A stretch of DNA of 64,000 nucleotides from the NCBI GenBank assembly GCA_002269645.1, contig NIVC01001566.1:72346-136345 (forward strand), given 5' to 3'. Each line of letters opens with the position of its first letter. Within the stretch, counting starts at the first letter, position 1. The notes beneath the pieces are model-generated. The model was not told the origin of the DNA, ran no database searches, and saw only the letters and a list, made by a program, of their open reading frames with translations. Positions 17,741 to 58,886 of the stretch are shown here, piece by piece. Source of the stretch: Macrostomum lignano (taxonomy: Eukaryota). A program made the translations under genes and the position numbers.

Positions 17741-17769
17741 ATCTTGATGGATTTGGCATCTTCAATCAG

Positions 17770-24271: not shown

Positions 24272-24303
<32 letters not shown>

Positions 24304-28576: not shown

Positions 28577-29280
28577 TATATACTAAAAATGAAAATCTTG
28601 CTTGCTTGTTTGCTTGCTTGTAATCGATTAGAGAAAAAATGGCTTAACCGATTTTCATGAGACTTGCACTGTTCGATCAGAAATTTTCCCGTGACGGTAC
28701 ATGCATCGTGGCTAAGAAATTGCTCGATGCTAAAGGCATTAAATATTCGAAAAACATGCTTTTTTGCAAAGGTCAAGCAAACTTTTCGACTTGAAATGCA
28801 TTGTAAGAATGCTAGAGAAAAAACTGACTGGTTGAATTCTGATTCTGAAATAGATTGCATCATCACTGAATTGTAACTCCGACTTGAATTGAAAATGTAG
28901 TGTGGAAGCGTAGCACCAGACTTGATTTAAATTGCGTAACCATATTGTTAACTGATACTGACTGACTGAGAAACTGATTATGTCATAACTGCCTCGTGTG
29001 ATTTACTCTATGCTTGGATTTTAAAGTGTTGAATTATATAAGTGCAAAATTTGATGTTATCAAAACGATGAGAGCTAGCCTAGAGGTGAACAAACTGAAC
29101 TGCCAAATGCAGCGACGATGGTTCGAATTTTCATAGAGTATAATTTTTTTAATTAAAGCTTTTCAACTTCATGAAAACTAAAAGACTTTTTAAAAAGAAG
29201 CGCCATGTAAAAAATCGTAAAAGCGTTATATAAAAATCATAGAAGCGTCATGTAAATAATCATAGAATCGCCATGTAAAA
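28577..29280 (+). repeat. Helitron-type 5' segment, duplicated near-identically at 32045-32760
   Basis: TATATACTAAAAATGAAAATCTTGCTTGCTTG... occurs twice, offset by 3468 bp. Confidence 0.93.
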
Positions 29281-32030: not shown

Positions 32031-32664
32031 ACGAGTTCCACTCGTATATACTAAAAATGAAAATCTTGCTTGCTTGTTTGCTTGCTTGTAATCGATTAGA
32101 GAAAAAATGGCTTAACCGATTTTCATGAGACTTGCACTGTTCGATCAGAAATTTTCCCGTGACGGTACATGCATCGTGGCTAAGAAATTGCTCGATGCTA
32201 AAGGCATTAAATATTCGAAAAACATGCTTTTTTGCAAAGGTCAAGCAAACTTTTCGACTTGAAATGCATTGTAAGAATGCTAGAGAAAAAACTGACTGGT
32301 TGAATTCTGATTCTGAAATAGATTGCATCATCACTGAATTGTAACTCCGACTTGAATTGAAAATGTAGTGTGGAAGCGTAGCACCAGACTTGATTTAAAT
32401 TGCGTAACCATATTGTTAACTGATACTGACTGACTGAGAAACTGATTATGTCATAACTGCCTCGTGTGATTTACTCTATGCTTGGATTTTAAAGTGTTGA
32501 ATTATATAAGTGCAAAATTTGATGTTATCAAAACGATGAGAGCTAGCCTAGAGGTGAACAAACTGAACTGCCAAATGCAGCGACGATGGTTCGAATTTTC
32601 ATAGAGTATAATTTTTTTAATTAAAGCTTTTCAACTTCATGAAAACTAAAAGACTTTTTAAAAA

Positions 32665-35600
32665 GAAGCGCCATGTAAAAAATCGTAAAAGCGTTATATA
32701 AAAATCATAGAAGCGTCATGTAAATAATCATAGAATCGCCATGTAAAAATCGTAAAAGCGTTATATAAAAGTCAAAAAAGCGTCATAAAAAATCATAGAA
32801 GCGTCATGAAAAAATCATGGAAGCGTCATGAAAAAATCATAGAAGCGTCATGTAAACAATCATAGAAGCGTCATGCAAAAATCATAGAAGCGTCATGAAA
32901 AAATCATAGAAGCGTCATGAAAAAATCATAGAACCGTCATGTAAACAATCATAGTAGCGTCATTAAAAATCATAGAAGCGTCATGCAAACAATCATAGTA
33001 GCGTCATGTAAAAATCATAGAAGCGTCATGCAGACAATCATAGTAGCGTCATTTAAAAAATCATAGAAGCGTCGTGTAAACAATCATAGAAGCGTCATGT
33101 AAAAGTCAAAATAGCGTCATAAAAAATCATAGAAGCGTCATAAAAAATCATCGAAGTGACATGAAAAAATCATAGAAGCGTAATGTAAAAAATCATAGAA
33201 GCGTCATGAAAAAATCATAGAAGTGACATGAAAAAACCATTAATGCGTCATGTAAAAAATCATGGAAGCGTCATGCAAAAATCATAGAAGCGTCATGAAA
33301 AAATCATAGAAGCGTCATGTAAAAATCATAGTAGCGTCATGTAAAAATCATAGAAGCGTCATGTAAAAAATCATAGAAGCGTCATGTAAACAATCATAGA
33401 AGCGTCATGTAAACAATCATAGAAGCGTCATGTAAAAAATCATAGAAGCGTCATGAAAATATCATAGAAGCGTCATGTAAACAATCATAGAAGCGTCATG
33501 CAAACAATCATAGAAGCGTCATGTAAAAATCATAGAAGCGTCATGAAAAAATCATAGAAGCGTCATGTAAACAATCATAGAAGCGTCATGCAAACAATCA
33601 TAGAAGCGTCATGTAAAAGTCAAAAAAGCGTCATAAAAAATCATAGAAGCGTCATGAAAAAATCATGGAAGCGTCATGAAAAAATCATAGAAGCGTCATG
33701 TAATAATCATAGAAGCGTCATGCAAAAATCATAGAAGCGTCATGAAAAAATCATAGAAGCGTCATGTAAAAATCATAGAACCGTCATGCAAACAATCATA
33801 GTAGCGTCATTAAAAATCATAGAAGCGTCATGCAAACAATCATAGTAGCGTCATGTAAAAATCATAGAAGCGTCATGCAGACAATCATAGTAGCGTCATT
33901 TAAAAAATCATAGAAGCGTCATGTAAACAATCATAGAAGCGTCATGTAAAAGTCAAAATAGCGTCATAAAAAATCATAGAAGCGTCATAAAAAATCATCG
34001 AAGTGACATGAAAAAATCATAGAAGCGTAATGTAAAAAATCATAGAAGCGTCATGAAAAAATCATAGAAGTGACATGAAAAAACCATTAATGCGTCATGT
34101 AAAAAATCATAGAAGCGTCATGTAAACAATCATAGAAGCGTCATGTAAACAATCATAGAAGCGTCATGAAAAAATCATAGAAGCGTCATGTAAAAAAAGC
34201 ATAAAAGCGTCATGTAAAAAATCATAGAAGCGTCATGTAAACAATCATAGAAGCGTCATAAAAAAACCATAGAAGCGTCATGTAAACAAGCATAGAAGCG
34301 TCATGTAAAAATCATAGAAGCGTCATGTAAACAATCATAGAAGCGTCATGTAAACAATCATAGAAGCGTCATGTAAAAATCATAGAAGCGTCATGTAAAA
34401 AAATCATAGAAGCGTCATGTAAACAAGCATAGAAGCGTCATGTAAAAATCAAAGAAGCGTCATGTAAACAATCATAGAAGCGTCATGTAAACAATCATAG
34501 AAGCGTCATAAAAAAACCATAGAAGCGTCATGTAAACAATCATAGAAGCGTCATAAAAAAACCATAGAAGCGTCATGTAAACAAGCATAGAAGCGTCATG
34601 TAAACAATCATAGAAGCGTCATGCAAACAATCATAGAAGCGTCATGTAAAAGTCAAAAAAGCGTCATAAAAAATCATAGAAGCGTCATGAAAAAATCATG
34701 GAAGCGTCATGAAAAAATCATAGAAGCGTCATGTAAACAATCATAGAAGCGTCATGCAAAAATCATAGAAGCGTCATGAAAAAATCATAGAAGCGTCATG
34801 TAAAAATCATAGAACCGTCATGTAAACAATCATAGTAGCGTCATTAAAAATCATAGAAGCGTCATGCAAACAATCATAGTAGCGTCATGTAAAAATCATA
34901 GAAGCGTCATGCAGACAATCATAGTAGCGTCATTTAAAAAATCATAGAAGCGTCGTGTAAACAATCATAGAAGCGTCATGTAAAAGTCAAAATAGCGTCA
35001 TAAAAAATCATAGAAGCGTCATAAAAAATCATCGAAGTGACATGAAAAAATCATAGAAGCGTAATGTAAAAAATCATAGAAGCGTCATGAAAAAATCATA
35101 GAAGTGACATGAAAAAACCATTAATGCGTCATGTAAAAAATCATGGAAGCGTCATGCAAAAATCATAGAAGCGTCATGAAAAAATCATAGAAGCGTCATG
35201 TAAAAATCATAGAAGCGTCATGTAAAAATCATAGAAGCGTCATGTAAAAATCATAGAAGCGTCATGTAAAAAATCATAGAAGCGTCATGTAAACAATCAT
35301 AGAAGCGTCATGAAAAAATCATAGAAGCGTCATGTAAAAAATCATAGAAGCGTCATGTAAACAATCATAGAAGCGTCATAAAAAAACCATAGAAGCGTCA
35401 TGTAAACAAGCATAGAAGCGTCATGTAAAAATCATAGAAGCGTCATGTAAACAATCATAGAAGCGTCATGTAAACAATCATAGAAGCGTCATGTAAAAAT
35501 CATAGAAGCGTCATGTAAAAAAATCATAGAAGCGTCATGTAAACAAGCATAGAAGCGTCATGTAAAAATCAAAGAAGCGTCATGTAAACAATCATAGAAG

Positions 35601-36250
35601 CGTCATGTAAACAATCATAGAAGCGTCATAAAAAAACCATAGAAGCGTCATGTAAACAATCATAGAAGCGTCATAAAAAAACCATAGAAGCGTCATGTAA
35701 ACAAGCATAGAAGCGTCATGTAAACAATCATAGAAGCGTCATGTAAAAATCATAGAAGCGTCATGAAAAAATCATAGAAGTGTCATGTAAACAATCATAG
35801 AAGCGTCATGCAAACAATCATGCATGCAAACAACTCATGGACAGATTCATCATGTAAACAATCATAGAAGCGTCATGTAAACAATCATAGAAGCGTCATG
35901 TAAACAATCATAGAAGAGTCATGTAAACAATCATAGAAGCGTCATGTAAACAATCATAGAAGCGTCATGTAAACAAGCATAGAAGCGTCATGTAAACAAG
36001 CATAGAAGCGTCATGTAAAAAATCATAAAAGCGTCATGTAAAAAATCCTAAAAGCGTCATTTAAAAAATCATAGTTGCGTCATGTAAAAATCATAGAAGT
36101 GTCATGCAAACAATAATAGAAGCGTCATGGTAAAATCATAGAAGCGTCATGCAAACAATCATAGAAGCCTCATATAAAAACTAATGAAAGTGTCATTTAA
36201 AAAATTAAGAAGAATAATGGAAGAATAAAAGAAGCGTCATGTAAAAATCA
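32665..36250. repeat. 22-24 bp satellite array 2
   Basis: Same unit, roughly 150 copies. Confidence 0.98.
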
Positions 36251-37081
36251 AAAGAAGCGCCATGTCAGACATGAAAGGTGTCATATAAAAATTAAATGAA
36301 GCTATAGTACAGTGCTGTGCTGGGGAGAATTACTGAGACGTCAAGGCTCACAGAGAATAACTGAGATTACAGGTGGGGGGGGGGTTTCTGAGATGTCAAA
36401 GCAAAAGTCAGAAGCTACTTCAAAGTTCATGTACTTTACTCAATTTTTATTACATTCATTGTTGGCTCGCCACAGGGGGGGCGCTGATAGAAGCAGAGTC
36501 ATGTAAAAAATAAAAGTAGCACTATGTATACATATAAGAAAAGTCATGTCGAAGTTAAAAGATTCATTTGGGAATTGCTACAATGTCAAAGCTTGGTGGA
36601 AATCGTTATAGTGCTGTGATTCTTAAAGAAGGAAACACTAAAATGCCAAGGCTTAGGGGAGAAGAATTGCTGAGATTTCAAGGCTTTAGGTTGGGTTAAA
36701 GTTAGGTTTAGGTCAGGTGTGGGTTGAGGGTTATATTTTATCGGGTTTCAAGGTTAACAGGGGATTTTTTTAGATTTCGAGATTTATGGGGGGCATCGCT
36801 GACATGTCAAGGCTTACGGGGGAATAGCTGAGATGTCAAGGCTCACGGGGGTATAAATGAGATTTCAAGGCTAAAGTCAGAAGCTACATGTAGTTTAATG
36901 AAAACTTTTTATTACATTTTTTGTTGGCTCCTCAGGGCTCACTGATAGAAAAAGCATAATGTAAAAAATAAAAGAAGCTTCATGTCGAAGCGAAGAGATT
37001 CATTTGGGAATCCCTACGAGGGAATCGCTATAACGCTGTAGTAGTGCTATAATGACTCAGAATTACTGAAATTTCAATGCT

Positions 37082-39519: not shown

Positions 39520-39810
39520 ATGCCAGGACCCGCTGCCAGTGCCACGTCTGTCGGTGCAGGACGGACCCCGTCGAAGGCCGTGTCGCCGCGAGGTGCCGCC
39601 GGCGGCGGCGTAAGACAGCGCAAATCTACTGGCAGTTCAACGGCCACGTCAACCAGGCGATCAACGCAGAACAATGCCAGCATGTGGCGCTTCTACACCG
39701 AGGACTCGCCTGGCATCAAGGTCGGCCCCGTCCCAGTCCTAGTCATGAGCCTGCTATTCATTGCCAGCGTCTTCATGCTGCACATCTGGGGCAAGTATAC
39801 CAGGGCTTAA
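39520..39810 (+). CDS. SEC61B: Protein transport protein Sec61 subunit beta, single exon, 96 aa
   Basis: [41 protein letters not shown] matches the highly conserved Sec61-beta C-terminus. Confidence 0.97.
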
Positions 39811-40607: not shown

Positions 40608-40990
40608 TCTTTTACCTTCCAGAGAATCCCCTTCTACCTTATAGAGAATCCCCTTTTACCCTGTAGAGAATACTCTTCTACCCTGTAGAGAATCCCCATT
40701 TACTCTGTAGAGAATCCCCCTTTACCCTGTAAAGAATCCCCTTCTACCCTATAGAGAATCCCCTTTGACCTTGTAGAGAATCCCCCTTTACCCTGTAGAG
40801 AATCCCCCTTTACCCTGTAGAGAATCCCCCTTTACCGTGTAGAGAATCCCCCTTTACCCTGTAGATAATCCCCCTTTACCCTGTAGAGAATCCCCCTTTA
40901 CCCTGTAGAGAATCCCCCTTTACCCTGTAGATCAGAGAACCATCTTTGACCATGTAGAGAGATCTCTTTTACCCTGTTGTGAATCCACTT
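40608..40990. repeat. Tandem minisatellite, 22-bp unit
   Basis: TAGAGAATCCCCCTTTACCCTG, period 22 (40801/40823), about 17 copies, degenerate at the edges. Confidence 0.93.
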
Positions 40991-41619
40991 TTACCATACC
41001 ATGTACAGAATCCCCTTGAATAATTCATGAAGATAGTCCTTCTTTTACCCAGTCTATAGTATCTCTATACCCTGGACAATCTCCCTTATCCATTCGAGTC
41101 AAGAATCTTTTTTTGTATGCATTAGAGACTTTCATCACGCAACTATAACATCGCTATTGCATAGAAAGTTAGAAAAAAGTTATAGCATATATTTTCGCTC
41201 CTCCTACTGAACAGTAGTGATAGTGGGCTGCTACAAATTTTACGAGCAAACAAACATTTTCGTGTTGAAAATAAACATGTAAACTTTGAAAAAATATAGC
41301 TGAACATACAGTACTCTTGTGAAATGCAATGTGTGTGCATGTGCGAGCTTATGGATCTGAATGCAGTACATGCACATCACATAAACCGCAACATAATGCA
41401 GGTTGTTGCTTGTAAGCTTGTGTAACTTTAATAGCACGCAGCAAATAGTTCTTTGACAAAAACTATGGACTTTACTAATCACAATAATTCCGATGAACTT
41501 AATCCTAAAAGAACCAATTTGATCAATGGGAGCATCTCCGCTTGCATGTACTTTTACTTGCATACTGTACCGGTACATGTAGACAACAACAACAAAATAC
41601 GTTGTCAGCCGGTCAAGCG

Positions 41620-44150
41620 AGAGTCAGTCATGAGAGGAAAGGGCAGAGTCACAGAGCACGTTTCAGGGCCTAGGCGTAAACGTTAGGCCGCACCACCGGC
41701 AGTGTCCGGGGCGTCGGCATCAGCCAGCAGGCAGTCGACGAAATGCCCAGTGCACGCTCCTGTCCCCGCTTACCTGCACCGTCTGCGGACAGTAAGACGA
41801 CTCGGCGCGGATGATACCGCCTGCCAGCTGGAATCGCCGACGGCGCAACAGTTCGCTGGGAATTGGGATAGGCTGGTGCGGCGATAGAGTGCCGCATTGG
41901 TGAGGTGCTCGCTGGGACTGCAGGACAGCCCTCACAGAACGGAAAGCAGCCCAGGCAAGTCTGCGGCGACTTCACAGATCCTCGGGAACGTCAGGGCACC
42001 AGACCGCCGAGGAAATTAAAACGAACTGCTGACAGTAAGTGTGGAAGCTTCCTCACCTTCGGGAAACCATCAGCGTCTCAGCAGAAAATCGCAGCCTCGA
42101 TGTCTATAGCTGGCGCGCGCAAAGCACGACGGTCTTCTGAGTGTTGAACCACCAGGCCGACGATCGCCGCAAAGCTTACCCTGCCTGTCTAGCTGGCGCT
42201 GGGCGCCCTCGACGGTCGAGGACAGCAGGGCGAGATCATCAGCGTAGCCACGCACGCTATAAGCCGCCTCTCTGGTTGGCGTCAACCCACGCGTCTCTGC
42301 AGCAGGAATAGGTCGTCGTCATCAGAGGGAAGAGTGGTCCACAGCTCTTCAAGGCCGTCCGGTGTCAACAGAACCCATGCAGTCAAGCACCAGGAAGAAC
42401 AGGAGCGGCCCAAGCGCAGCTCCTTGAAGCACCTCAGAGGATGTCTCAAAGACATCCGACAGGCCGTCCGGTGTCAACATGCAGCAGCGCTCCGTGTCAT
42501 GATATTGCGCCATGACGGCGGAAATCAGCTGCTCTGGTACGTTGTACGCACAAATCACCATTGGGAGCACGGCCCTCACAACCGAGTCAAAAGCCTTTCC
42601 CGAAGTCAATAAAGAGAGCAATAGGGTTCGACTGCGCTTAATTCCTCGATGATTTGGCGAAGAGCCAGGATCTGCGCCACTGTGCCGCGATGGTGCCGGA
42701 ACCCGTTCTGCTCAGGCCGCAAATACGGATCCAGCTGCAACCGCGATACCAGCATCCGATTAAACAGCTTCGGAGCGCAGGACTGCAGGCGGATGCCTTG
42801 GTGCTCTTCAAGCCGTGTGGTGTCCGGCGTCTTCAGAATAGCGACGATTTTCGCCGTGGTCCACTTTTTGGGTGTTGCCTCACCGAAAAGCACTAGGTTC
42901 ATCACACTGGCGACCTCGCTGGCCACACAGTGGAGTCGCAGCACCTTGATGTTTACCTCGTCCGGACCCAGCGCTTTTGCCGCCCGGAGTCTTTAGGGCG
43001 AGCATCACAACGTCGGATGTGTTGGCTGGGGCTACGCTCGTACATTGAAGCTCTTCTCTGCTGGCAAAAGCAGCTTCAGATCGCTTGGCAGCGCGGAGGC
43101 GGCGGCGAGTTGACAATGGCGGCGAAGGACTCGCGCAGCACATTTCTGTGCTCATCCGGAGTGTCGCCAGCCAGATTGAGCGGGATGTGCCAGAGCCTCC
43201 TCCGCCTCGCGAGTTGGCCGAGTGCTCAGACGGAGCAGCTCTCCAGCTCTGCCCTCGATTTCTGAATCGCAGGGTTCTCCTGTCTGGCCGGCTGCCTACG
43301 TTCGGCCGGTCGCATCAGCGGAACTGCTTGCTTCGTCGCGGCTCTAACCGCGGAACAATTACCTCCGTGCAGTCGGCGCGCCCGCACCTGTCGCCAAGCG
43401 CGCTGACAAAGGCGCTAGCAAAATAACTACGCGTCTGGGTGTCCTTGAGTGCATGCACGGTAGTAGCGCCGCGGTTGCCACTTCGGCGGACGGTAGAGCA
43501 GATCACATACACACAGAATGAAGACGTGGAGCCGATGGTCGGACCAGAGAGCTAGCATGCGTGATGGTGCGGCTGTCGACGGCGCGGCGGGGCTCGCGAA
43601 GACGCACAAGCACGTAATTGAGCTGTGCCTGCCTCCGCGTCGCATTTCATTGCCCCGCTTGCAGCCCACGAGGGTCGCGAGCCTGCCGGGTGGCTTGCAG
43701 AAGTGGGTGTTGGCCGACACTATGTCCTGCCTCTCCAGGAAGTCCCCCAGCGCTCCGGTGATGTCGTTCTCGCCCGGTGTCACCAACAGCGACCTCTCAG
43801 ACCTACGCAAAACTGCGTTCAGGTCTGAATGGACGATCATTGTGTTCACGCTGCGCCGTCTCCTTCCCCTGCGCTGCGCCGCGCCCAGGTCCTCACAATG
43901 AATTCCCGGGTCGGCCCTGATGGACACCTCAATTGCAGTGCGATAACGTTCGCAGCTTAAGTCAAGCGCTACCATATGTAGCTGCGCCAGCAGCCCTCTC
44001 CACCAAAGCGGCCTTGAGAGTGCGGCAGTTCAGCGTCCCGAACTGAAGTGTGCCCTGTGGTACGGTTCAGCCTCATGTTCCCTGGCGCCATCCAGAATAT
44101 CCGCATGGGCCAGCAGCAACTCGGCGGGCAGCACCTTGCCGACCTCGTCA
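41620..44150 (-). mobile_element. Degenerate RTE-like non-LTR retrotransposon (APE endonuclease + RT), boundaries approximate
   Basis: FGTLNCRTL, SANTHFCKP, KLFNRML, EQNGFR...QILALRQIIEE, KAFDSV, VLQG and YADDLALL, spread over several frames with many frameshifts. Confidence 0.85.
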
Positions 44151-44469
44151 GTGCAAATAGAAGTTTACAACATACTTACTTATAGAGTAAGTCTGGAACA
44201 TAGACTATTGTCATGTAAAGGTAACGTGAAGGAGTCCTCAAGTATGCTCTTAAAGCCAAACATTATAACCTCTCTCTCACACTAGTGAAGGAACAGAAAA
44301 AGGAAAAAATCCCCAAGATCCCCTAGGAACTTTGGCTTAAAGTAAGCCACTCTGGGGCGAGTCTAATGACTCTTTCGGGACCGTATAACCCGTATAAAAC
44401 GAAACGGTCACAAAAAGGGGCTGTTACCGTGTTTTTTACCGTTACGGTCACCAGTTACCATTTTTTACC

Positions 44470-45155
44470 GTATTTGTGACTGTTTAGTTCAGGGTCACCA
44501 GGTGACTGTTCAATGTTACCGTACTTTGTGACCGTTTTGTTTAGGGTAACCCTGTGACTGTTCATAGTTACCGTATTTTGTGACCGTTTTGTTTAGGGTC
44601 ACATGTTACCGATCAATGTTACCGTATTTTGTGACCGTTTTGTTTAGGGTAACCATGTGACCGTTCAATGTGACCGTATTTTGTGACCGTTTGTTCAGGG
44701 TCACATGTTACCGATCAATGTAACCGTATTTTGTGACCGTTTTGTTTAGGGTAACCATGTGACCGTTCAATGTGACCGTATTTTGTGACCGTTTTGTTTA
44801 GGGTCACATGTTACCGATCAATGTGACCGTATTTTGTGACCGTTTTGTTTAGGGTAACCATGTGACCGTTCAATGTGACCGTATTTTGTGACCGTTTGTT
44901 CAGGGTCACATGTTACCGATCAATGTGACCGTATTTTGTGACCGTTTGTTTAGGGTCACATGTTACCGATCAATGTGACCGTATTTTGTGACCGTTTTGT
45001 TTAGGGTCACATGTTACCGATCAATGTGACCGTATTTTGTGACAGTTTTGTTTAGGGTCACATGTTACCGATCAATGTGACCGTATTTTGTGACCGTTTT
45101 GTTTAGGGTAACCATGTTACCGATCAATGTTACCGTATTTTGTGACCGTTTTGTT
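44470..45155. repeat. Left subterminal tandem array, 50-51 bp unit built from GTGACCG/GTTACCG motifs
   Basis: GTGACCGTATTTTGTGACCGTTTTGTTTAGGGTCACATGTTACCGATCAAT repeated about 13 times. Confidence 0.95.
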
Positions 45156-45532
45156 CTGTTGTGGAGTTTACTACTTGTCGCTTTCTACCAACTGTTGTCG
45201 TCTTCACTGCATAATAGGCTGCTACTATGTTGCTTAATTTGAGTGCGGCGTGACGCACGTGTTATTGTTGCCTGAATTTTTACTTTACAATTTTACAGAG
45301 TAGCCTCTCCTGAAATAGGTCACATGGATACCCAGTTATATATAGTTAGGTATGGACAAGTGATAGTTATGAATAGGGAAGCAAATTTATTACCTATGCC
45401 CAGGGATACGTTCTCTTTCAAATCAGTATATAAGGAGAAGTGACGGTAACCCACGAAGCAACTGACTAATTTCTCATGAACGTTTGCCACTTTTGCAGAG
45501 GATAAGAATCATTAAGAACAAAAATCTCTATC

Positions 45533-46652
45533 ATGGAAGACCAGCAACGCCGCGCCATTATGAATCGTTTAAGAGTGAAACGATTTCGAGAACGCAAGAC
45601 AGTGCAGCTTCTATTTCAAAGGCGACAACAGTGGTTGCAATCTGGAACGACTGCAATGGGCGCCGCCATTGGAAATCCACAGACGAATCGTGGTAATAAG
45701 CGCCGTCATCCAGACGACGACATCGGTAGCGAAGGTACTCCACAACCGCCATCTACCGGCGAAGCTACTTCACAACCGCCATCTACCGGCGAAGCCTCCA
45801 CCAGCGAAACTGCCAGTGAAGCCGGCGATGCCAGCGAAGCTACCGAAAGCTCTGCCAGCGAAACTGCCAGTGAAGCCGGCGATGCCAGCGAAGCTACCGA
45901 AAGCTCTGCCAGCGAAACTGCCAGTGAAGCCGGCGATGCCAGCGAAGCTACCGAAAGCTCTGCCAGCGAAACTGCCAGTGAAGCCGGCGATGCCAGCAAA
46001 GCTACCGAAAGCTCTGCCAGCGAAACTGCCAGTGAAGCCGGCGATGCCAGCGAAGCTACCGAAAGCTCTGCCAGCCAAGCACCTAGCGACGATGCCGAAT
46101 ACAGCGATGACGGTGACGGCGATGATTATGATTCAGACGACGCTAAACTGCGTAACTTTTGCCAGTTGGCCGCCTATCCTGGCGCTACTGTCCGGCGCAG
46201 CAAATAGTGCGGCATCGGTTTGTCCATCGTGTGCACCACTGTGCGCCAATGGCTTTAACTGGCCAGCAGCCTGGATCGACATGGCGTCAGACAAAGCTGC
46301 AGAAAAAGCTGTGGTGGTCGACATGCTGCAGCGAGTGGCCAAGCAGCTACCGGCACGGGCCGAGGAGCCCAGCAAGATACACCGCTGCCGCATTGTCATC
46401 ACGACAATGATTGCGTACCTGGCGCAACAAAGATCAAAAGGCGCCAGCCATGGTGACACGCCCGCTGAGGCGCAAAAGGCAATGGCCAACTGCCTGCGCA
46501 TGATGTGCGATCGATATGGCCAAACTGTACTGGAGTCCGGCGAGGCGGTGCAACGGTCCGCCAACGGGCCGCCGGTCGCCGTAGTGTACGGCAAAGCGGC
46601 GTGGTTTCGCGAGATGTCTCGGGCGGAGGCCAGCTTTTGGAAGGCCGCCTAG
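45533..46652 (+). CDS. Cargo ORF A: basic N-terminus, 54-bp Ser/Ala/Glu repeats and acidic tract; possibly spliced or frameshifted into a second helical segment
   Basis: ORF 45533-46207 (RVKRFRERK, five ASETASEAGDASEATESS-type repeats). A protein-like continuation (MASDKAAEK...FWKAA) ends at 46652 in another frame. TATATAAG lies at about 45427. Confidence 0.55.
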
Positions 46653-47742
46653 ACCGCCCGCGTCGTGCCGGAGCCCGAGCCGCTGTCCGCTCGCCGTTAT
46701 AGGCCGCGTGGTGGTCGCTCTACCCGCCTGCGGCGATTGTTCACCGCCATGGCTGCACTACTGCATAGCCGACCGGTCTGCGCCTTCGGCATGGCGGACG
46801 CCACTTTGGCAATTTTACTGCAGTATTGGGACATGTCCAGTTAGACCTATATAGGTGAAATTTCAAAGAGCATCCGAGGTGTGGCCAAAAGTTAACGAGA
46901 ATGTAGAATTGAACGTCTCGAATATTAAACTTAAAAAACAAAATAATTGCCTAGAATAGTAGCATCATCTCTATAATACACTTCATGAAACAGCCATTGG
47001 CTTTTTAATTAAATAATACATCGTAAATAGTAATAATAAATAAAATTAAATAAATGAATAAAATAATATTAGTAAATAGTAAATAGTACTTAAATAGTTC
47101 CAACTGTTCAATAACACATTCACGTTACACTTTTGGCCACGTCTCGTAGTTTAACGGCCAGCCAACACAGCTGCATTTATTTTGCCAGCGCCATTTATTT
47201 TGGCGATGACGCATTAATGCGCAGATATTTTTCTACCGCTGCCGCTTGACAGTCTACGCCTGTTAAGTCGTCAGCGTATGTTATTTATATATATGGCCAT
47301 ATATGGCAATGACGCATTAATGCGCAAATATTTTTCTTCCACAGCTTTTATTGTTCTTTCACACTATGTTCTTCCAATTATTAACCTAAGTAGTACTAAT
47401 ACTACCGTGTATGTACTGTGTGTTGCAATTAATATTCATAATTCTACTACTACTACTAATAATAATACATATAGCCCGGTGGCCGCAAGGTTGCTGCAAG
47501 TTATGCGGCGCCTATTTTGGTCAATTCTTTACTATTACTCTGGTCACAGCTGCAGTGTGTGTGTGTGTTGCCTCCTTTGGAGTAACTAATATAAGCGTAC
47601 AGGAAATATGCAGACTCTTCCCTATAGCCCGTTTGCGTACGCAGCTGTTGCTTTCATTCTGATCTGAAGCTTCAAAATTTTAAACTTTTTGCATCTTAAC
47701 GCCTTGCAGCTCCGTACCTGTCCGAGTTTCTTCCCATCGTCG

Positions 47743-48537
47743 ATGTCGGATCACTGGTCTCACGCCGCAACATGCGAAATCTGCAAAGCGCTGGTTCACG
47801 AGAACTGGGCCTTGAGAGCGGAGGTGGAGCGCCTGCGTAGCGGACGACCGGGTTCGCCTGTGTTCGATACCAGCCGCAACGTGCGCTTCCATCGGGCTAT
47901 CGTGCGTTCAGATGTAGTGCCCAGCACTCAAGTGACAAAGTCCGCATGGCCGTTCAAGGACACTCGCTACAGCGATATTGCCGCCAACCAGGCGCGTGAC
48001 TGTGCGCAAGTCTGCGAATCGGAGACTATGGGCCCCGAGAGTCTGCATCACTGGTACGCCGACAACCAGGCGAGTCGGCGTCAGCTGAATCAGCCGGCCG
48101 CGCAGCTGGACAGTGAGGATGAGCAGCAGTCGCGTGACGGGCCTTTGGCAATGTCCACTGAAGCCATTCAAACCGGACCGGCTCAAATGGTGTTGTCGGA
48201 CAGTTTCATAGCAGACTATAACCGACTGCCTGAGGCGAGGATTCCGCAAAACTGCGTTTTTAAGGCTCGAAAGCGGGATGAGCGCATGCAGCTCGAAGCG
48301 CACTGCTGCGTTCAATGCGAGGGTTGGTTTGCCAACCTATCGCCGGAGACGAAGAGGAAACGCCTGCAGGCGGCTGGCCGTCATCGGTCCAACCAACCGA
48401 GGCCAAACTACGACCCCAATTTTTTCCGCATAGAAATGCCGGACACACCCCCAGAGGCACCAATCGATGCGATGAAAGTTGGTAAGCGTCGTCGCAAACC
48501 TCTACAACTAAGAGGTCCGGAACCTCGCAATAATTAG
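47743..48537 (+). CDS. Cargo ORF B: mini CtIP/Sae2-like protein, 264 aa from the first ATG
   Basis: RKRDERMQLEAHCCVQCEGWFANLSPETKRKRLQAAGRHRSNQPRPNYDPNFFRIEMPDT aligns without gaps to the CtIP C-terminal domain as recalled ([21 protein letters not shown]...[25 protein letters not shown]). N-terminal CxxC plus short coiled coil. Confidence 0.8.
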   Translation: MSDHWSHAATCEICKALVHENWALRAEVERLRSGRPGSPVFDTSRNVRFHRAIVRSDVVPSTQVTKSAWPFKDTRYSDIAANQARDCAQVCESETMGPESLHHWYADNQASRRQLNQPAAQLDSEDEQQSRDGPLAMSTEAIQTGPAQMVLSDSFIADYNRLPEARIPQNCVFKARKRDERMQLEAHCCVQCEGWFANLSPETKRKRLQAAGRHRSNQPRPNYDPNFFRIEMPDTPPEAPIDAMKVGKRRRKPLQLRGPEPRNN

Positions 48538-48953
48538 ACAAATAAAGTGATGAAGGACTGCGCTACATCACTAAATTTCTAACCGTACTTAAAAACCGCA
48601 CGTCTGCTATGTGTTTTGGTATAAAACTTTTTCTCGCTCACGACTGCGCTACATCACTAAATTATTACTAACGGTATTTTAAACCGTCCGACATACGTCT
48701 GTCAAGCCGTTGTTCCATTCATTTCAAATGTACCATTGATCACCTTTAATCTTAGTACCTTGTGTAAAACACGGACTAACACTAAACTATAGTTAAACTA
48801 AACTAAACTAGCTAGTACTAGTACCTGCACGCTAAACACGGACTAACACTAAACTAGCAGCTGCACGTTTTTTCTACTATATCTGTACTTTGTAACACTC
48901 AGATTAAACTACATCCTCATTTGCAGCACTGCAGTATTACAATAGAAACCAAA

Positions 48954-50684
48954 ATGCCCAAACCAAGTGACGCTACTACAAAGCCAAAAGAGAAAGGCAG
49001 CAAAACGGGCGCCAAAGGGTCGCGAAAGAGGCCCATCGAGACGGAGCCAAACAATGAAAAAGCGGTAAAAAAGCGCAACAGTAAGTCCAACTTAGCCTCC
49101 GCCGCTGCTAGCGCTACTTCCGCCACTGGCGCATCCACTAATGCTGATGGCGCTTCTATCCCCGCTGGTGCTTCTACCGCCGCTGGTGCTACTGCCGCCG
49201 CTGCAGCTGGCGCATGCGCTAACACTGATGGTGCTTCTACTCCCGCTGGTGCTTCTACCGCCGCTGGCGCGACTGCCGCCGCTGCAGCTGGCGCATGCGC
49301 TAACACTGATGGTGCTTCTACTCCCGCTGGTGCTTCTACCGCCGCTGGCGCTTCTAGCACCTCTGCGACTGGCGCCGGTAAAAAGCCAGCTTCCGGTGGC
49401 CCAGCAGCATACCGCTACTGGGTATTTGAATATGCGCCGGAAGACGGCGGTCGGCTTGGAGTCTATGCCGACAAGTGTGTTGTTACTGACGGCTCAGTAG
49501 ATTCGAGCAAACTGTCAGTTGACGATGATGTCACCATTAGACCGGGAAAGACCGCCAATAGTAAGGCGTACCGCGTGCGAATATGCAAAGGGCCATACCG
49601 CACAAAGGCGGCTGCAGAAGCCGGTGCCAGTGCCTGTCAAGCGGTACACAGGCCGGGTGGCATTAACATGCCTAACGGTTGCGCCACCTGCCAGGCGCTC
49701 AGGCATGAGGTTTTAAACCTCCGGACATCCGCCGAATTGGCGCAGCAGACTGCCGACGGCTACAGGGAAAGCCTGCAACGGCAGAATGAAGACCTGGCCA
49801 AAAGACTCGAAGACGCTGAATTTGAGCGCAATGAGTACAAAGAGAAGTATGAAAGTGCAGCCAATAGAACACGCGAGTTGGAGTGCCAACTCGAGTACGC
49901 ACAGATCGGTGCTAATCCTTCAAGTTCTGCTGAACAATCGGTCGGTGTTCTCGCCAAATATGCTACGGTGTTGCAGGACGCCGTGTTTTCCGCCATCGGC
50001 GTTCTGCAAGGTGCGGTTTCGCAGGATATCGTAGTAGATTGCGTTGCTGACACGATCAGCAGCAGCAGTACGACTGCTGGTGGTGGCGCTTCTGCGGCCG
50101 CCTCGTCTGCAGCTCCGTTGCTGGACGACATGGACCTGCGCGCTCAGATCCGAATGTCGTCAGTGAATCAGCGGAAACGTGAGCCCGAGACGAGGTCCTT
50201 GACAGCGCGCTGTCCCGACGTCGTCGTGTCGGCCACCGACTACGCAAAGATAAAGAATGCCGTGTCCGCCTATGTCAAGGGAGGTTACAGGAGTACCGAC
50301 GCAGATAAATTGCTTCGGACCTTGTACTTAGCAATTTTCACGGACGACGAGCTGACGACCTGCTCTTACACGGGACGTAGGTCGACAAAAACTGGTCCGC
50401 CACCAAAGGCGGAAGTGTCAAAGAGAAAAAAATTCGCCATTAAGGCGTTTATTGAAGGCCTGCAGTTGCCCAACCAAATTCCGGAGAGAAAGTATGCCGG
50501 CGTGTTTAAGCGCACTGGATTCTGTATTGCGCGAAAACTACAAAAATCGCTCAAATTGGCACCCAGCGGAAATGAGGTGGCGACGATCGACATCGATGCC
50601 GATGATGAGGACGCCAACGTTGGCGACAACGGAGATCACAATGACGACGAAGCTGCAGCCTCTCATCCATCTGCAAATCCATGA
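48954..50684 (+). CDS. Cargo ORF C: coiled-coil protein with a probable C-terminal BEN domain, 576 aa from the ATG at 48954
   Basis: Basic NLS-like start, 81-bp Ala/Gly repeats, CxxC plus a long coiled coil, and LLRTLYLAIFTDDELTTCSYTG...KFAIKAFI, which resembles BEN helices. Confidence 0.65.
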   Translation: MPKPSDATTKPKEKGSKTGAKGSRKRPIETEPNNEKAVKKRNSKSNLASAAASATSATGASTNADGASIPAGASTAAGATAAAAAGACANTDGASTPAGASTAAGATAAAAAGACANTDGASTPAGASTAAGASSTSATGAGKKPASGGPAAYRYWVFEYAPEDGGRLGVYADKCVVTDGSVDSSKLSVDDDVTIRPGKTANSKAYRVRICKGPYRTKAAAEAGASACQAVHRPGGINMPNGCATCQALRHEVLNLRTSAELAQQTADGYRESLQRQNEDLAKRLEDAEFERNEYKEKYESAANRTRELECQLEYAQIGANPSSSAEQSVGVLAKYATVLQDAVFSAIGVLQGAVSQDIVVDCVADTISSSSTTAGGGASAAASSAAPLLDDMDLRAQIRMSSVNQRKREPETRSLTARCPDVVVSATDYAKIKNAVSAYVKGGYRSTDADKLLRTLYLAIFTDDELTTCSYTGRRSTKTGPPPKAEVSKRKKFAIKAFIEGLQLPNQIPERKYAGVFKRTGFCIARKLQKSLKLAPSGNEVATIDIDADDEDANVGDNGDHNDDEAAASHPSANP

Positions 50685-50892
50685 GTCGAAGTGTACCAGA
50701 CTGAAATGCAGCCATTTCGGGCATTTTATTATTTACTGGGCTTTTTCTGATCTTATCGGGAATAATGAAAGAAAATGGAGAGAGTGGGAGGGAGAAATTT
50801 GTGTATGCAACATATCATTGTGCTAAACTAAACAAAGCTAAACTAAACCTAAACGTCGCAGTACAATGGGTTTCTAAAACTGCTTAACTTTT

Positions 50893-51467
50893 GGTCGCGC
50901 ACTTCTGCGATGTCCCACTAATTCTAGTTCTTTTTGGCGCACTTCTGCGATGTCCCACTAATTCAACTAGTTCTTTTTGGCGCACTTCTGCGATGTCCCA
51001 CTAATTCAACTAGTTCTTTTTGGCGCACTTCTGCGATGTCCCACTAATTCAACTAGTTCTTTTTGGCGCACTTCTGCGATGTCCCACTAATTCAACTAGT
51101 TCTTTTTGGCGCACTTCTGCGATGTCCCACTAATTCAACTAGTTCTTTTTGGCGCACTTCTGCGATGTCCCACTAATTCAACTAGTTCTTTTTGGCGCAC
51201 TTCTGCGATGTCCCACTAATTCAACTAGTTCTTTTTGGCGCACTTCTGCGATGTCCCACTAATTCAACTACTTCTTTTTGGCGCACTTCTGCGATGTCCC
51301 ACTGATTCAACTACTTCTTTTTGGCGCACTTCTGCGATGTCCCACTAATTCAACTAGTTCATTTTGGCGCACTTCTGCGATGTCCCACTAATTCAACTAG
51401 TTCATTTTGGCGCACTTCTGCGATGTCCCACTAATTCAACTAGTTCATTTTGGCGCACTTCTGCGAT
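50893..51467. repeat. Tandem array, 43-bp unit, about 13 copies, inside the transposon
   Basis: GGCGCACTTCTGCGATGTCCCACTAATTCAACTAGTTCTTTTT, period 43 (50941/50984). Confidence 0.97.
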
Positions 51468-51644
51468 CGCTATGTACCATATAATAATGCATTTTAATAA
51501 TAGCGCGCTTTGCGTATATAAAGCTTAATTGCCGCAATTACTGGTTACTTCACATCTAATATATCACTGCTGATTTGTATTCCTGTTACTTATTTGCACA
51601 TTATTATACTGTTGGTCGATAGTCAGAAAAAACACACAAGATCA

Positions 51645-52320
51645 CAAAACGGTCACAAAATATGGTAACAGTAAACAGTAACATAGTTACCCTAAGCAAA
51701 ACGGTCACAAAATATGGCAAAAGTAAACAGTAACATAGTTACCCTAGGCAAAACGGTCACAAAATACGGTCACATTGAACGGTCACATGTGACCCTGAAC
51801 AAACGGTCACAAAATACGGTCACATTGAACGGTCACATGTGACCCTGAACAAACGGTCACAAAATACGGTCACATTGAACGGTCACATGTGACCCTGAAC
51901 AAACGGTCACAAAATACGGTAACATTGAACGGTAACACGTGACCCTGAACAAACGGTTACAAAATACGGTCACATTGAACGGTAACACGTGACCCTGAAC
52001 AAACGGTCACAAAATACGGTCACATTGAACGGTCACATGTGACCCTGAACAAACGGTCACAAAATACGGTCACATTGAACGGTAACATGTGACCCTGAAC
52101 AAACGGTCACAAAATACGGTCACATTGAACGGTAACATGTGACCCTGAACAAACGGTCACAAAATACGGTCACATTGAACGGTAACATGTGACCCTGAAC
52201 AAACGGTCACATATATGGTAACTATGAACGGTATCATGTTACCTTATTATCATGAACATGAACGGTCACAATAAACGGTCACAAGCATTACAGACCACGG
52301 TAACAAGTGGAACGGTCACA
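51645..52320. repeat. Right subterminal tandem array, 50-bp unit, reverse complement of the left array
   Basis: GACCCTGAACAAACGGTCACAAAATACGGTCACATTGAACGGTCACATGT, period 50. Confidence 0.95.
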
Positions 52321-52429
52321 GCCCCTTTTTGTGACCGTTTCGTTTTATACGGGTAAGGACTCTGGGGACGAAGAGTCGTATTTGAGGCGTGCTTGAGTCT
52401 CTGTCAAATGATTAGTGTAAAGAAACTAT

Positions 52430-52635
52430 ACATGTAGCTTCTGACCTCAGCCTTTGTATCTCAGCAATTCCCCCCGAGACTTGACATCTCAGCAATCCCC
52501 CCCCCAAGACTTGACATCTCAGCAATCCCCCCCCAAGACTTGACATCTCAGCCATCCCCCAGACTTGACTTCTCAACAATTCCCCCCCCCCTGGCCCCAA
52601 GACTTGACATCTCAGCAATCCCCCTCAAGACTTGG
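52430..52635 (-). repeat. Short repeat cluster of the GCTGAGATGTCAAG family, also at about 6450-6530 and 36330-37260
   Basis: GACTTGACATCTCAGCAATCCCCC repeats and TACATGTAGCTTCTGAC, the reverse complement of GTCAGAAGCTACATGTA at about 36876. Confidence 0.8.
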
Positions 52636-55669: not shown

Positions 55670-55885
55670 TAGTTTTCCGTCCTGTCTGAGTAGCCTTTTC
55701 TCGTATTCTGTTAAGCTAGCTGTACATAAGATTCTAATAGCTAAAGTATTTTAAAGAATATTTTATTCATGTCTTGACTTACTCGTAGCTGCAGGGGGCG
55801 TCCGGCGTATGCAGCGAGGAGGCGGAGGAGACCGCCCATTCCGCTAGCACCTGGCGACCAATGACTTCCATTGAAGTGATGTCGC

Positions 55886-57440
55886 TCAGGGGGACCCGTC
55901 GGTCTCGCCTGCAGTGCGGTCCTCCTCACCAACGGTGGGGAAGAACTCAGCTCGTCCCGTGTCCCTGAGGTACCGGGCGAGCAGCGGGATGCTCTCGGGT
56001 TTGCAAACGTCGGAGAGAACCAGGTTTGGCCCGAGGTGAGTGAGCCTGGCCCTGGTGAAAACCTGGCAGTGGCAGATAAAATGCTCGGCGTTTTCACTGC
56101 CTGAGCGGCAGAAGGGGCACCGCTCTTCGGGTACTTGGCCCTGAAGGAAGTGGTGGCGAGAGAAGCAGCCATGCCCGGAGAGGGCCATGCTAACTGCTCT
56201 GAGGTCTCTGCGGTTGAGCCTGAGGAGGGCTCTACGCAGGAGAGGAGAAGGGCAGGGGACGGCCGCACGGGATTGCCTACAATTCCGGGTGTCGTGCCAC
56301 CTGCGGAGATGCTCGGAGTCAGTCCAGCGCTTAACGCGGGAGTTGATCACCGAGGCGGGGATGGAGGCTCCCGGGCCCGGCCCCAGCAGCGCGCCGGCGG
56401 AGCCAGCCTTGGCCAGCAGGTCAGCGCGCTCGTTGCCGAGGAAACCGGCGTGGCCCGGGATCCATCTGAGCTCCACTGGTTGCCTTGCGCAAGTCCATTG
56501 AGCTGGGTGTTGCAGTCCAGGACGGACCTGGAGCTGGTGGTGCTGCGGCAGAGGGCCCGAAGGGCTGCTTGGCTGTCAGAGTGAAAAATAAATTTCCGAC
56601 CGCTAAGCTGCCTTTGGCGCAGCTCTGCCGCGCAGGAGCTGATGGCAAGCACCTCGCTCTGAAAAACACTGGAGTTGAGCCCAGTGTGCTGGGAGTAGCT
56701 CCACACCACTTCTCCCTTGAAGAATACGCAAGCTCCGAAGCCTGAAAGACCATGCCTCATAGAGCCGTCAGTGTAACAGTGGACTTCAGCATCGCTCCAG
56801 CTGTCACTCGACTCGTGTCGAGGCTGAATAGTGACCTTATACCTTTGGCTCAGGAGAAGGGTGGCTGGGATCGAGTCCGTGAGGATATTGAGCCCGCCAC
56901 ACTCCTCGAGAGCCTTCAGGCAGAGGTCAGAGTGCGGGATAAGCGACCGCTTCTTAAAGGCCCGCACTTTCCTGAAGGCCACCCCAGCATCCAGAAGACG
57001 CCGGGTGCTCTACGCCGTCTCTCCTTTGATATAAAAATCACATCCTCTGCAATGAGCAGCTCGAACCGACGGGACGCGGCGTAGTCAATGGGGTTGACTA
57101 GCGCGTCGCAGACTACTGGGGCATCGCCTGGGAAATAGGCAGATGCTGCCAGCACAGGTTTATTGGGAATGAAGTTATTGATTTGAACAACACAGATGTC
57201 CCCAGTCGAGAGATTAGGTCTCATCCATGCCTCAAAGGCTTTAGCAGCAAAGACCAGAGACCTTGGACGAGGCTGAGTGCCCGCCATGCAAAAACAGTGG
57301 TAGCCAGATGGCACATTATTTGGCTTACCTTTAGTCATCCAGGGCTCCTGCACGACGACCAGGCCCGGAAGCTGTTGCTCTGTCGTGCGCATCAGGTTGA
57401 CTGACGCCGCCACGCAGTGCTGGGTATTGATCTGCAGACA
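55886..57440 (-). pseudogene. LINE ORF2 remnant: APE N-terminal half fused to RNase H and zinc knuckle
   Basis: CLQINTQH...VVVQEPW...ASAYFP, then YTDGS, VFQSEVLAI, FHSDSQAAL, WIPGHAG..GNERADLLAK and CPFC...AEHFICHC. No RT motifs in between; junction near 57040. Confidence 0.88.
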
Positions 57441-57635
57441 CCAGGTAGCCGCTGGCCTCAGTGCAGATCGGGTGTTGCAGTCGCCAGGAGTTCCTCCTCC
57501 TCCTCGGCGCTCACCAGCTTCGGGCCGGGGTCGCCGGTGTCCATAGGCTCCTCTTCAGCAAAAGGCCCCCGATTGGTCGGAAGGCAATAGGCAGCGTTCG
57601 CCGCCCTTCGCCCACCGGCCACGGGGTCCTCCGCT

Positions 57636-58886
57636 TCAGACTGGCCCAATGCCCTGGAGCAGCCAGCCGCCTGGGCAGGCGGGTCCGTCTCCAGTCGGCC
57701 CTGCCCCGAGGGGTTGGGCCCAGCTGGGACGTCCCCACCCTCCCTGGACGAACTCTCGCCTCAGCTGGGTGATTTTGGCGGTACGAACTGCCTCAGCTGC
57801 GCGCTGGTTCAGGCCGCGCCGCTTGGTGCTGCGCGTCGGGCGTCGGTCACCTCCGCCCTCAGCAGCGCGTTCAGCTTTACCCGCGCGGCCGTGCTGCCGG
57901 GCGGGGCGGTTTGCTTTGGCAGCCGGAGCAGAAGCTCCCGCCTCTGCCCCGGCCGCCTCCGCATCCCGCCCGCCCTGCTCACTGCCACGGGGAGGGTCGG
58001 CCTCATAGGAGCGGATGCGCAGCTTCCAAAGGCCGACGTTGACGAAGCTGCCGTGTGGATAGCGCCTCATCCAGGCGTCCGATAGCCCCAGGATGGCTGT
58101 GAAGCCAGTGCCGTCGGTGCGCTTAAGGGTGTCATGCACCACTAGGCCCGCGGCGGGAAGCTCTCGGTTGACTGCTAGCAGTCCTTTCCGGAGCTCGTCA
58201 GCAGAGGTAACGACGCTCCTGGCCGGAACCCAGATTCGATGCCTCTTGGTCCGGGGGTGCTCGTCCTCTCTGCAGAAGGCTAAATTGAGGTCCCAGCTCT
58301 GCTCGGGCAGCAGCTCAAGGAGCCGCCGACCCGAGTCAGCATCACTGGGCCAAATGAGAAGGCACGAGTCCCTCGTCGCATTCGAATGAATGTTCAGAGG
58401 CGTGCCCTTCAGAGTTTGCTTCCACAGGAGGCCATCAACGGTACCTCTCACCTGCTTCAGCTGGTCGGGGGACAGGCGCGCGTCCTTCCCCAGAATGACA
58501 ACCGCCGGTTGCCTCTTTGCCGCATCAGCGTAGGAGGCCCGGGGGTCGGTGGAGCCTTCTTCAAGTGGGCTGTCCACCCTCCCGGCTGCATCGGCCTCCC
58601 TATCCTGGGCAGGGACTTCAGTGGGCTCGAGGCCCTCTTCCGCCACCGCCCCAGATTGGGAAGCTTCCACTGCCGCGGGCCGTTGGCCCCTGGCGCCGGT
58701 TAGGCTTCCGCCCTCCTTGGCCCGCCTCGCCTTGTTAAGTCGACGGCGGGCAGCTCCAGAGGTGGTGCTCAGCTGCTTGGCAGCTGGAGTAGCCGGTGTC
58801 TTGTTGGAGGCACCGCTCAAAGTTGGCTCTACGGGTCTCGCCGAGGCGTCCCCGATGGTAGCAGGTGGTATGGCCGCGGAGTCCAC
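57636..58886 (-). CDS. LINE ORF1 (gag-like nucleic-acid-binding protein), probably with frameshifted ends
   Basis: 416-aa ORF (SGAARRRLNK, SYADAAK) directly upstream of ORF2 within the TSD-bounded element. Confidence 0.75.
   Translation of the reverse strand: MDSAAIPPATIGDASARPVEPTLSGASNKTPATPAAKQLSTTSGAARRRLNKARRAKEGGSLTGARGQRPAAVEASQSGAVAEEGLEPTEVPAQDREADAAGRVDSPLEEGSTDPRASYADAAKRQPAVVILGKDARLSPDQLKQVRGTVDGLLWKQTLKGTPLNIHSNATRDSCLLIWPSDADSGRRLLELLPEQSWDLNLAFCREDEHPRTKRHRIWVPARSVVTSADELRKGLLAVNRELPAAGLVVHDTLKRTDGTGFTAILGLSDAWMRRYPHGSFVNVGLWKLRIRSYEADPPRGSEQGGRDAEAAGAEAGASAPAAKANRPARQHGRAGKAERAAEGGGDRRPTRSTKRRGLNQRAAEAVRTAKITQLRREFVQGGWGRPSWAQPLGAGPTGDGPACPGGWLLQGIGPV

Follow-up and report, generated by a model that had tools for sequence, protein, structure and literature searches.

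How does a stretch of flatworm DNA that has the tips of a cut-and-paste transposon, and an interior of genes none of which is recognisable as a transposase, come to move? The question is raised by a 7965-bp element at positions 44389-52353 of the window analysed here, which is the last 64 kb of the 136,345-bp contig NIVC01001566.1 (assembly GCA_002269645.1) of Macrostomum lignano, a model for transgenesis and regeneration in which DNA transposons are, to our knowledge, essentially uncharacterised. A preliminary description drawn from the letters of the window had proposed a non-autonomous but gene-rich element that is mobilised by a partner transposase elsewhere. We compared the window with three further loci, L002 (NIVC01002788.1), L003 (NIVC01001309.1) and L005 (NIVC01001708.1). 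The unit is bounded by terminal inverted repeats (TIRs), inserts with a 3-nucleotide staggered cut of its target, makes deletion derivatives and is transcribed, without encoding a known transposase. We read it as the most complete copy seen of a young, low-copy family of class II TIR elements that is foldback-like, gene-bearing and transposase-less, and most likely non-autonomous and moved in trans, and we put the probability of this reading at roughly 0.7.

A single insertion with a three-base target-site duplication

The outer features of the element are as follows.

44386-44388: target-site duplication TAA, left copy, from the sequence and the empty site at L005
44389-44424 (+): left 36-bp TIR CCCGTATAAAACGAAACGGTCACAAAAAGGGGCTGT, with one inward-pointing ACGGTCAC at TIR position 17
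44467-45155 (-): left subterminal array, 51-bp unit x13.5 (Tandem Repeats Finder), three ACGGTMAC sites per unit
51647-52243 (+): right subterminal array, 50-bp unit x11.9 (Tandem Repeats Finder), mirror image of the left array
52318-52353 (-): right 36-bp TIR, complementary to the left TIR at 36/36 positions
52354-52356: target-site duplication TAA, right copy, from the sequence and the empty site at L005

The preliminary description had left open that two independent short elements flank single-copy host DNA, and had suggested a search for empty sites and for target-site duplications (TSDs) at other pairs of TIRs. Both were found. L005 matches window 40609-44388 at about 97% identity; a second alignment picks up at window 52354, and the two overlap by exactly three bases. 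The empty site there reads ...gggaccgtaTAAggactctgggg..., an uninterrupted target with a single TAA and none of the 7965 bp. Since L005 keeps this intact empty site with its single TAA, the whole 7965 bp are one insertion and a single mobile unit. The M. lignano assembly is known to carry big duplicated blocks of at least 95% identity, owing to the karyotype of the sequenced line (PMC5730564). L005 itself is therefore a duplicated or homeologous counterpart of the locus, in which the element either never inserted or was precisely removed.

A second insertion came to light through the GenBank gene model PAA66355, which covers much of the interior and whose 90%-identity cluster has two further members, encoded at L002 and L003. 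The same ends, with the same interior between them, recur there (L002 9022-13193; L003 8257-12289), which again bears out a single unit. The flanks of these two copies are common to each other (97-98% identical outside the element) and unlike those of the window; L002 and L003 thus go back to a single older insertion, which was duplicated afterwards along with its surroundings. Its TSD is CTA, on both sides and in both copies. Two independent insertions have therefore each produced a 3-bp duplication (chance about 1/64 each), in the contexts A-TAA-G in the window and A-CTA-T at L002/L003. The length of the duplication is constant and the target is not strictly TWA: the TWA target proposed at the outset agrees with TAA in the window and is weakened by CTA at the second locus. 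By its TIRs, the constant length of its TSD and its empty site, the unit is a class II TIR cut-and-paste transposon.

Perfect terminal repeats and mirrored arrays of a short site

The 36-bp perfect TIRs, the TAA duplication and the mirrored subterminal arrays of about 0.7 kb that had been noticed at the outset all hold up. CCCGTATAAAACGAAACGGTCACAAAAAGGGGCTGT occurs exactly twice in the 64-kb window with 0 mismatches (shuffles give 0), and no further copy is present in the window when up to three mismatches are allowed. No TIR is found at the inner edge of either array with 6 errors allowed. The termini read 5'-CCCGTAT...ATACGGG-3'.

The left and right arrays are reverse complements of each other, with inverted-repeat arms of up to 154 nucleotides at 90-97% complementarity. 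They are dense in a short site of the ACGGTMAC type, which occurs 38 times in the outer 800 bp of one end and 34 times in that of the other; the 13-mer AACGGTCACAAAA has 27 occurrences against 0.07 expected, all within the two ends. Read from the tip inward, each end has first one ACGGTCAC in the TIR and then about 35 ACGGT(C/A)AC sites in the reversed orientation, three per unit. Besides the TIR copy, a single site departs from this reversed orientation: it points inward and lies at position 57 of the left end. Many of the sites are arranged as palindromes: GGTMACATGTKACC is present in seven units of the left array, and the 14-bp palindrome GGTCACATGTGACC, perfect or near-perfect, in fourteen units. 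Neither the TIR nor the array unit was found in a scan of metagenome contigs (0 matches).

An interior of co-oriented genes without a known transposase

The interior frames are co-oriented and parted by AT-rich spacers (37-41% GC).

45533-46207 (+): open reading frame (ORF) 1, 224 aa, basic N-terminus, five 18-aa acidic Ser/Glu/Ala repeats and an Asp-rich tail
46281-46652 (+): ORF1b, possible 123-aa helical protein, host-like GC content at third codon positions (0.71), missing from the deleted copies
46653-47742: AT-rich spacer, 41% GC, two palindromes CGCATTAATGCG, possible promoter region of ORF2
47743-48537 (+): ORF2, 264 aa from ATG, CxxC-helix N-terminus and CtIP/Sae2 C-terminal domain at aa 153-260
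48954-50684 (+): ORF3, 576 aa from ATG, coiled coil and weak BEN match
50897-51467: internal tandem array, 43-bp unit x13.4, copy number varying among the three copies

ORF1, ORF2 and ORF3 are the three co-oriented frames of the preliminary description, at the same positions, and the acidic protein that it had recognised is ORF1, whose acidic repeats correspond to a 54-bp DNA repeat at 45801-46075 and which forms the 5' part of the transcript-derived models PAA66355 and PAA55211. ORF1b has no family match in Pfam, and a PDB sequence search with it gave nothing significant. The two copies of the 12-bp palindrome CGCATTAATGCG lie at 47210 and 47313, 103 bp apart, inside a duplicated 42-bp segment, and may be regulatory.

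No transposase, integrase or nuclease family was found in the four ORFs by Pfam search, nor was any such family found (Pfam, E<=0.05) in six-frame translations of 45151-51700 with stops masked, in agreement with the missing DDE motif noted earlier. Exons of any known DDE superfamily should have shown up if of useful length; a very divergent or novel enzyme is conceivable. Because neither the ORFs nor the six frames hold a transposase family, we read the element as non-autonomous.

A deletion derivative, and the age and transcription of the family

The copy at L002/L003 is a deletion derivative. It is without window 46191-49275, a 3.1-kb internal deletion whose junction is the same in L002 and L003 and lies within a 12-bp direct repeat.

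46179-46190 (+): left 12-bp microhomology CTGGCGCTACTG, deletion junction of L002/L003
49264-49275 (+): right 12-bp microhomology CTGGCGCGACTG, deletion junction of L002/L003

The deletion joins ORF1 in frame to distal ORF3 (PAA55211, 657 aa), with loss of ORF1b, ORF2 and the start of ORF3. An internal deletion bounded by microhomology is the classical origin of defective cut-and-paste derivatives. We also considered that the shorter copy might be a spliced, RNA-mediated version of the longer one and rejected this, because its boundaries are not GT...AG but the 12-bp direct repeat CTGGCGCNACTG, which argues for a microhomology deletion at the DNA level.

The three copies differ by just 0.2-1.3% in their unique segments; the differences are mostly in array copy number. 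The family was thus active around the time when duplication set the paired contigs apart, and later as well. The L003 copy seems to be decaying: it has a frameshift in the repeat region of ORF1, only its distal 338 aa are annotated (PAA69591), and 8 private substitutions fall in its part of ORF3 (L002: 0).

The model PAA66355 (45533-50684) fuses ORF1 and ORF3 into a chimera across a 3-kb "intron" with non-canonical ends, which are also the ends of the L002/L003 deletion; four of the five 54-bp repeats are left out of the model as well. Probably, transcripts of other, deleted copies were mapped onto the full copy. Since the annotation is transcript-derived, with transcripts that overlap annotated repeats left out (PMC5730564), the family is transcribed, as judged from these gene models, and its interior lay outside the repeat library of that study.

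ORF2 is a homologue of the CtIP/Sae2 C-terminal domain

The most unusual feature of the element is a transposon-borne, constrained homologue of CtIP. ORF2 found nothing in a word-indexed search; an exhaustive HMMER search was needed, which returned 42 hits at E<0.001, all on about residues 153-260 of ORF2 and at the extreme C-terminus of the targets, with vertebrate RBBP8 among the named hits. When ORF2 is aligned with 22 of these hits, 22 of the 23 sequences are recognised by Pfam SAE2 at E<=0.01 and 6 by CtIP_N; ORF2's own SAE2 score, 18.1, is just below the cut-off of 19.8, and a PDB sequence search with it gave nothing significant. ORF2 retains all seven invariant residues (R181, L184, C189, C192, R213, H214 and R215), and with them the CxxC and the RHR...P.TP...F/W pattern by which the CtIP/Sae2/Ctp1 C-terminal domain is recognised. 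The repair factor of the preliminary description is thus homologous to this domain.

The nearest relative of ORF2 is a protein of M. lignano itself, Mlig004387 (PAA54340/PAA88737), at 56% identity over 108 aa (pairwise E 7e-36); in an HMMER search ORF2 reaches the host CtIP-like protein at E 3.7e-27. The Mlig004387 gene has three exons and lies between ordinary genes, with no element motifs nearby. ORF2 stems from the Macrostomum CtIP lineage and is a paralogue of the host gene, because the two proteins have derived states in common that are absent elsewhere in CtIPs (HCC, WFA, G-RHR, NFFxIEMPxTP and the loss of the RGY-extension). Their sole common part is the C-terminal domain: the N-terminus of ORF2 is a short CxxC-helix that is unrelated to the host coiled coil, and neither a match to the CtIP_N tetramerisation coiled coil nor similarity to the host N-terminus was found in ORF2.

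Between ORF2 and the host gene, nucleotide identity is 60%, the proportion of synonymous differences (pS) 0.71, which is saturated, and the nonsynonymous divergence (dN) 0.40, with a dN/dS ratio of about 0.2. Despite this old split, ORF2 is open over 264 codons. Judged from the sequences, such an open frame is hard to square with neutral decay along the ORF2 branch, which argues that the protein has been useful to its carrier. Its catalytically relevant C-terminal motifs have been retained by purifying selection, and ORF2 looks old and constrained and not freshly captured. A narrow literature search turned up no description of a CtIP/Sae2 homologue borne by a transposon, and nothing relevant on CtIP transduplication.

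ORF3 is an orphan coiled-coil protein

ORF3 consists of a basic N-terminus, Ala/Ser/Thr-rich 81-bp repeats, a small beta region, a CxxC followed by a long coiled coil, and a C-terminal region of four helices with a weak BEN match that ends in an acidic tail. Its sole database relatives are the members of its own 90% cluster, including PAA66355 (BOX15_Mlig024753g1), for which UniProt gives the name "BEN domain-containing protein"; searches with ORF3, whole and without its low-complexity part, found no relatives beyond this cluster among 5.8 billion proteins, a scan of viral contigs found none, and a PDB sequence search gave nothing significant. Single-sequence AlphaFold models are confident solely for a 75-residue coiled coil and place four helices in the BEN-like region at a predicted local confidence (pLDDT) of about 50-70. 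A Foldseek search of these models against PDB returned no match at E<1; the BEN domain of NACC1 ranked 8th at a non-significant E of 2.6. The chromatin or DNA-binding factor proposed earlier is thus a plausible BEN protein by sequence whose match stays below the Pfam threshold. Our literature search on BEN-domain transposons found nothing relevant.

ORF2 and ORF3 have a 15-aa motif in common, C-x2-C-[KQ]-A-L-x-H-E-x3-L-R (CEICKALVHENWALR at 47773-47817 in ORF2; CATCQALRHEVLNLR at 49680-49724 in ORF3). It precedes a helix or coiled coil in each protein and hints at a shared oligomerisation or zinc module. Paralogy of the two ORFs was not significant by BLASTP.

How the element may move

We infer that a transposase supplied in trans would recognise the TIRs, cut the target with a 3-nucleotide stagger and paste the element into it. 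The roughly 70 ACGGTMAC sites (about 35 per end, many of them as GGTCACATGTGACC) would probably serve as a platform for a sequence-specific, oligomerising DNA-binding protein that pairs the ends. Such a role is proposed by analogy with TnpA, which binds subterminal 12-mers of En/Spm and divides the work with TnpD, and with the Myb-like protein that Harbinger places on its subterminal motifs. The binder could be the transposase itself or the element's own coiled-coil, BEN-like ORF3, which is the obvious candidate from within the element because of its coiled coil and its putative BEN domain. BEN domains typically bind short palindromes.

It is appealing to propose that the mini-CtIP encoded by ORF2 acts on the double-strand breaks left by excision and steers their processing and repair. 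CtIP/Sae2 is an activator of Mre11 and directs breaks into resection. With its own CtIP, the element could tip the balance towards resection and towards homologous repair of the gap on the sister chromatid, whereby the donor copy would be restored and the element would make a net gain. The 12-bp-microhomology deletion at L002/L003 is the type of product expected from an aborted resection-dependent repair, a correspondence that is suggestive only.

Weighing the reading and its alternatives

Several points weigh against a non-autonomous element moved in trans in the way just outlined. The partner transposase is hypothetical, and none was seen in the loci at hand. PIF/Harbinger and Zator ends usually begin with G, and the CCC termini of the element fit neither CACTA/CMC nor such G-starting ends, so that the source of the transposase is not narrowed to one superfamily. 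Target preference and copy number rest on n=2 independent insertions. ORF2 is known from the window copy alone, and its constraint is figured against the host gene. As to ORF3, the BEN match scores 15.2 bits (cut-off 23.2; E 0.025) over half the profile, at aa 463-509 of the 587-aa frame, and the structural models were unusable, with a pLDDT of 46 for 402 aa and of 50 for the 141-aa C-terminal part.

It is possible, though we regard it as unlikely, that the element is autonomous after all, its own orphan proteins (ORF3, ORF1/ORF1b and perhaps ORF2 in recruiting the host Mre11 complex) carrying out excision and integration by a machinery that profile libraries do not see. All ORFs are intact in this young element, ORF3 is without relatives outside its own cluster, ORF2 has kept its nuclease-cofactor motifs, and the motif common to ORF2 and ORF3 stands ahead of a helix in both. 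However, no catalytic fold or motif is detectable, and ORF3 is predicted to be a coiled coil with a small helical domain. Moreover, the L002/L003 copies lack ORF2 and ORF1b, such derivatives being usual in families mobilised in trans, and perfect TIRs together with regular 3-bp TSDs usually point to a DDE transposase.

We think it quite improbable that the unit is a composite in which two independent short elements, foldback-like or of the miniature inverted-repeat (MITE) kind, flank host genes and move them jointly. Such transfer has a precedent in the palindromic Zator-1 elements of amphioxus, which can move host DNA between them (PMC12905397), and ORF2 is of host origin. However, the window holds just two TIR copies, one per outer tip and none at the inner edges of the arrays, the arrays are mirror halves of a single element, and the second locus has this interior between these ends too. 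On the TIR count and the target sites together, the composite was rejected.

A bolder version of self-sufficiency, which we consider a long shot, is an element of undescribed type in which ORF3 binds the roughly 70 ACGGTMAC sites and pairs the ends and the mini-CtIP recruits or activates host Mre11-Rad50-Nbs1 to make or process the breaks. If true, mobility would hang on a hijacked repair nuclease, with no conventional DDE transposase. Hardly credible, finally, is a piggyBac-superfamily element with an atypical target: CCC...GGG termini are characteristic of piggyBac-like elements, but the empty site gtaTAAgga is without TTAA, the duplications (TAA, CTA) are of 3 bp and not 4 bp, and no DDE_Tnp_1_7 match occurs in six frames, and piggyBac was rejected on the target-site data.

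The neighbourhood of the insertion

The surroundings of the element are ordinary flatworm genome, with an intronless WD40 gene, a Ty3/gypsy element, large satellites and a Sec61-beta gene.

39520-39810: Sec61-beta gene, 4.6 kb upstream of the element, also encoded on NIVC01001708.1 (L005)

Directly right of the insertion lies a 27-29-bp minisatellite ATCTCAGCAATCCCCCCAAGACTTGAC, with about 5 copies at window 52458-52589 and 66 copies at L005 15424-17238. The Ty3/gypsy-type retrotransposon (8009-11865) is apparently intact, with a gag-protease-reverse transcriptase-RNase H ORF of 958 aa that overlaps an integrase ORF of 327 aa. A macro-repeat, about 2.5-2.7 kb in length and 80-95% identical, occupies about 17000-28500 with a strong GC skew of 0.3-0.49; it bears repeated minus-strand ORFs of 160-260 aa, among which there is no Pfam match. 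It is followed at 29196-36265 by a satellite of about 300 copies of the 22/23-bp unit AGAAGCGTCATGTAAAAATCAT at 80-85% match. A GC-rich block (55741-58886, minus strand; GC up to 62%) may be a degraded retroelement: among its several overlapping minus-strand ORFs, one has an RNase H fragment (E 4.6e-5).

Significance

With its ends known exactly, a clean empty site and a TSD of 3 bp, this validated and recently mobile element is a starting point towards an endogenous active transposase of M. lignano, which would have value as a tool and would be a mutagen worth being aware of. CtIP/Sae2 licenses end resection and the choice of homologous repair versus end joining, and the repair of the excision break is a step long assumed to govern the gain in copy number of transposons. 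Should ORF2 act on the element's behalf, this would directly exemplify a cut-and-paste transposon that manipulates the repair of its own excision break. The dense and regular arrays of sites, for their part, make a convenient system for studying how accessory DNA-binding proteins pair transposon ends.

Comparison with known systems

The structural description is real, and the element falls within known kinds as a TIR transposon that is foldback-like, non-autonomous and gene-bearing. In Repbase practice, non-autonomous elements are assigned to an autonomous family by the length of the TSD and by the identity of terminal bases 1-11 (PMC4455052); the terminus of the element, for comparison with transposase families, is CCCGTATAAAA. 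No superfamily among those considered (CMC, PIF/Harbinger, Zator, piggyBac, Tc4 and foldback) agrees with it in every respect.

Among CACTA (CMC) elements, En/Spm and its derivative dSpm offer several likenesses: a 3-bp TSD without strict sequence specificity (here TAA and CTA), dense inverted subterminal arrays of a short motif at both ends, derivatives with internal deletions and, in the logic that we propose, an element-encoded DNA-binding protein on subterminal repeats alongside a separate transposase. The 2-4 bp TSD and the subterminal arrays of CMC are thus present. However, the termini are CCCGT and not CACTA/CAC, no CMC-type DDE transposase and no TnpD- or TnpA-like protein is encoded in any of the six frames searched with Pfam, and the arrays here, with about 35 sites per end, far exceed those of En/Spm in length and regularity.

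With PIF/Harbinger and Zator the element has in common a 3-bp TSD (TAA in the window), a palindromic or foldback-like build and the carriage of non-transposase genes. Amphioxus Zator-1, which flanks the sex-determining region and apparently carries a host-gene copy, is palindromic as well, with TAA/TTA TSDs and 33-bp TIRs, similar in length to the 36 bp found here (PMC12905397). Unlike these systems, the second insertion has duplicated CTA and not TWA, the ends begin with C, and neither a DDE_Tnp_4 or Zator transposase nor a Myb/SANT-like ORF was found in the six-frame Pfam search.

The build of the element, with mirror-oriented ends of tandem units around a unique, gene-bearing middle and an array copy number that varies among copies, is also that of foldback elements such as FB/FB-NOF and Galileo of Drosophila and Tc4 of C. 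elegans. The TSD is 3 bp here, in contrast to 9 bp in FB and 7 bp in Galileo. TcMar-Tc4, which inserts in CTNAG and duplicates TNA, was rejected because the targets here, ATAAG and ACTAT, do not follow the CTNAG rule (PMC11071193).

Finally, coding sequence of a host lineage inside a TIR transposon, here the C-terminal domain of CtIP, places the element next to the Pack-MULEs, Turmoil-1 of C. elegans (PMC2572040) and the fungal TET/JBP transposons (PMC12730594). Unlike the sequence in these carriers, the CtIP sequence here is no recent fragment: ORF2 is 44% diverged from the host at the protein level and saturated at synonymous sites, yet it is intact and complete in its motifs.

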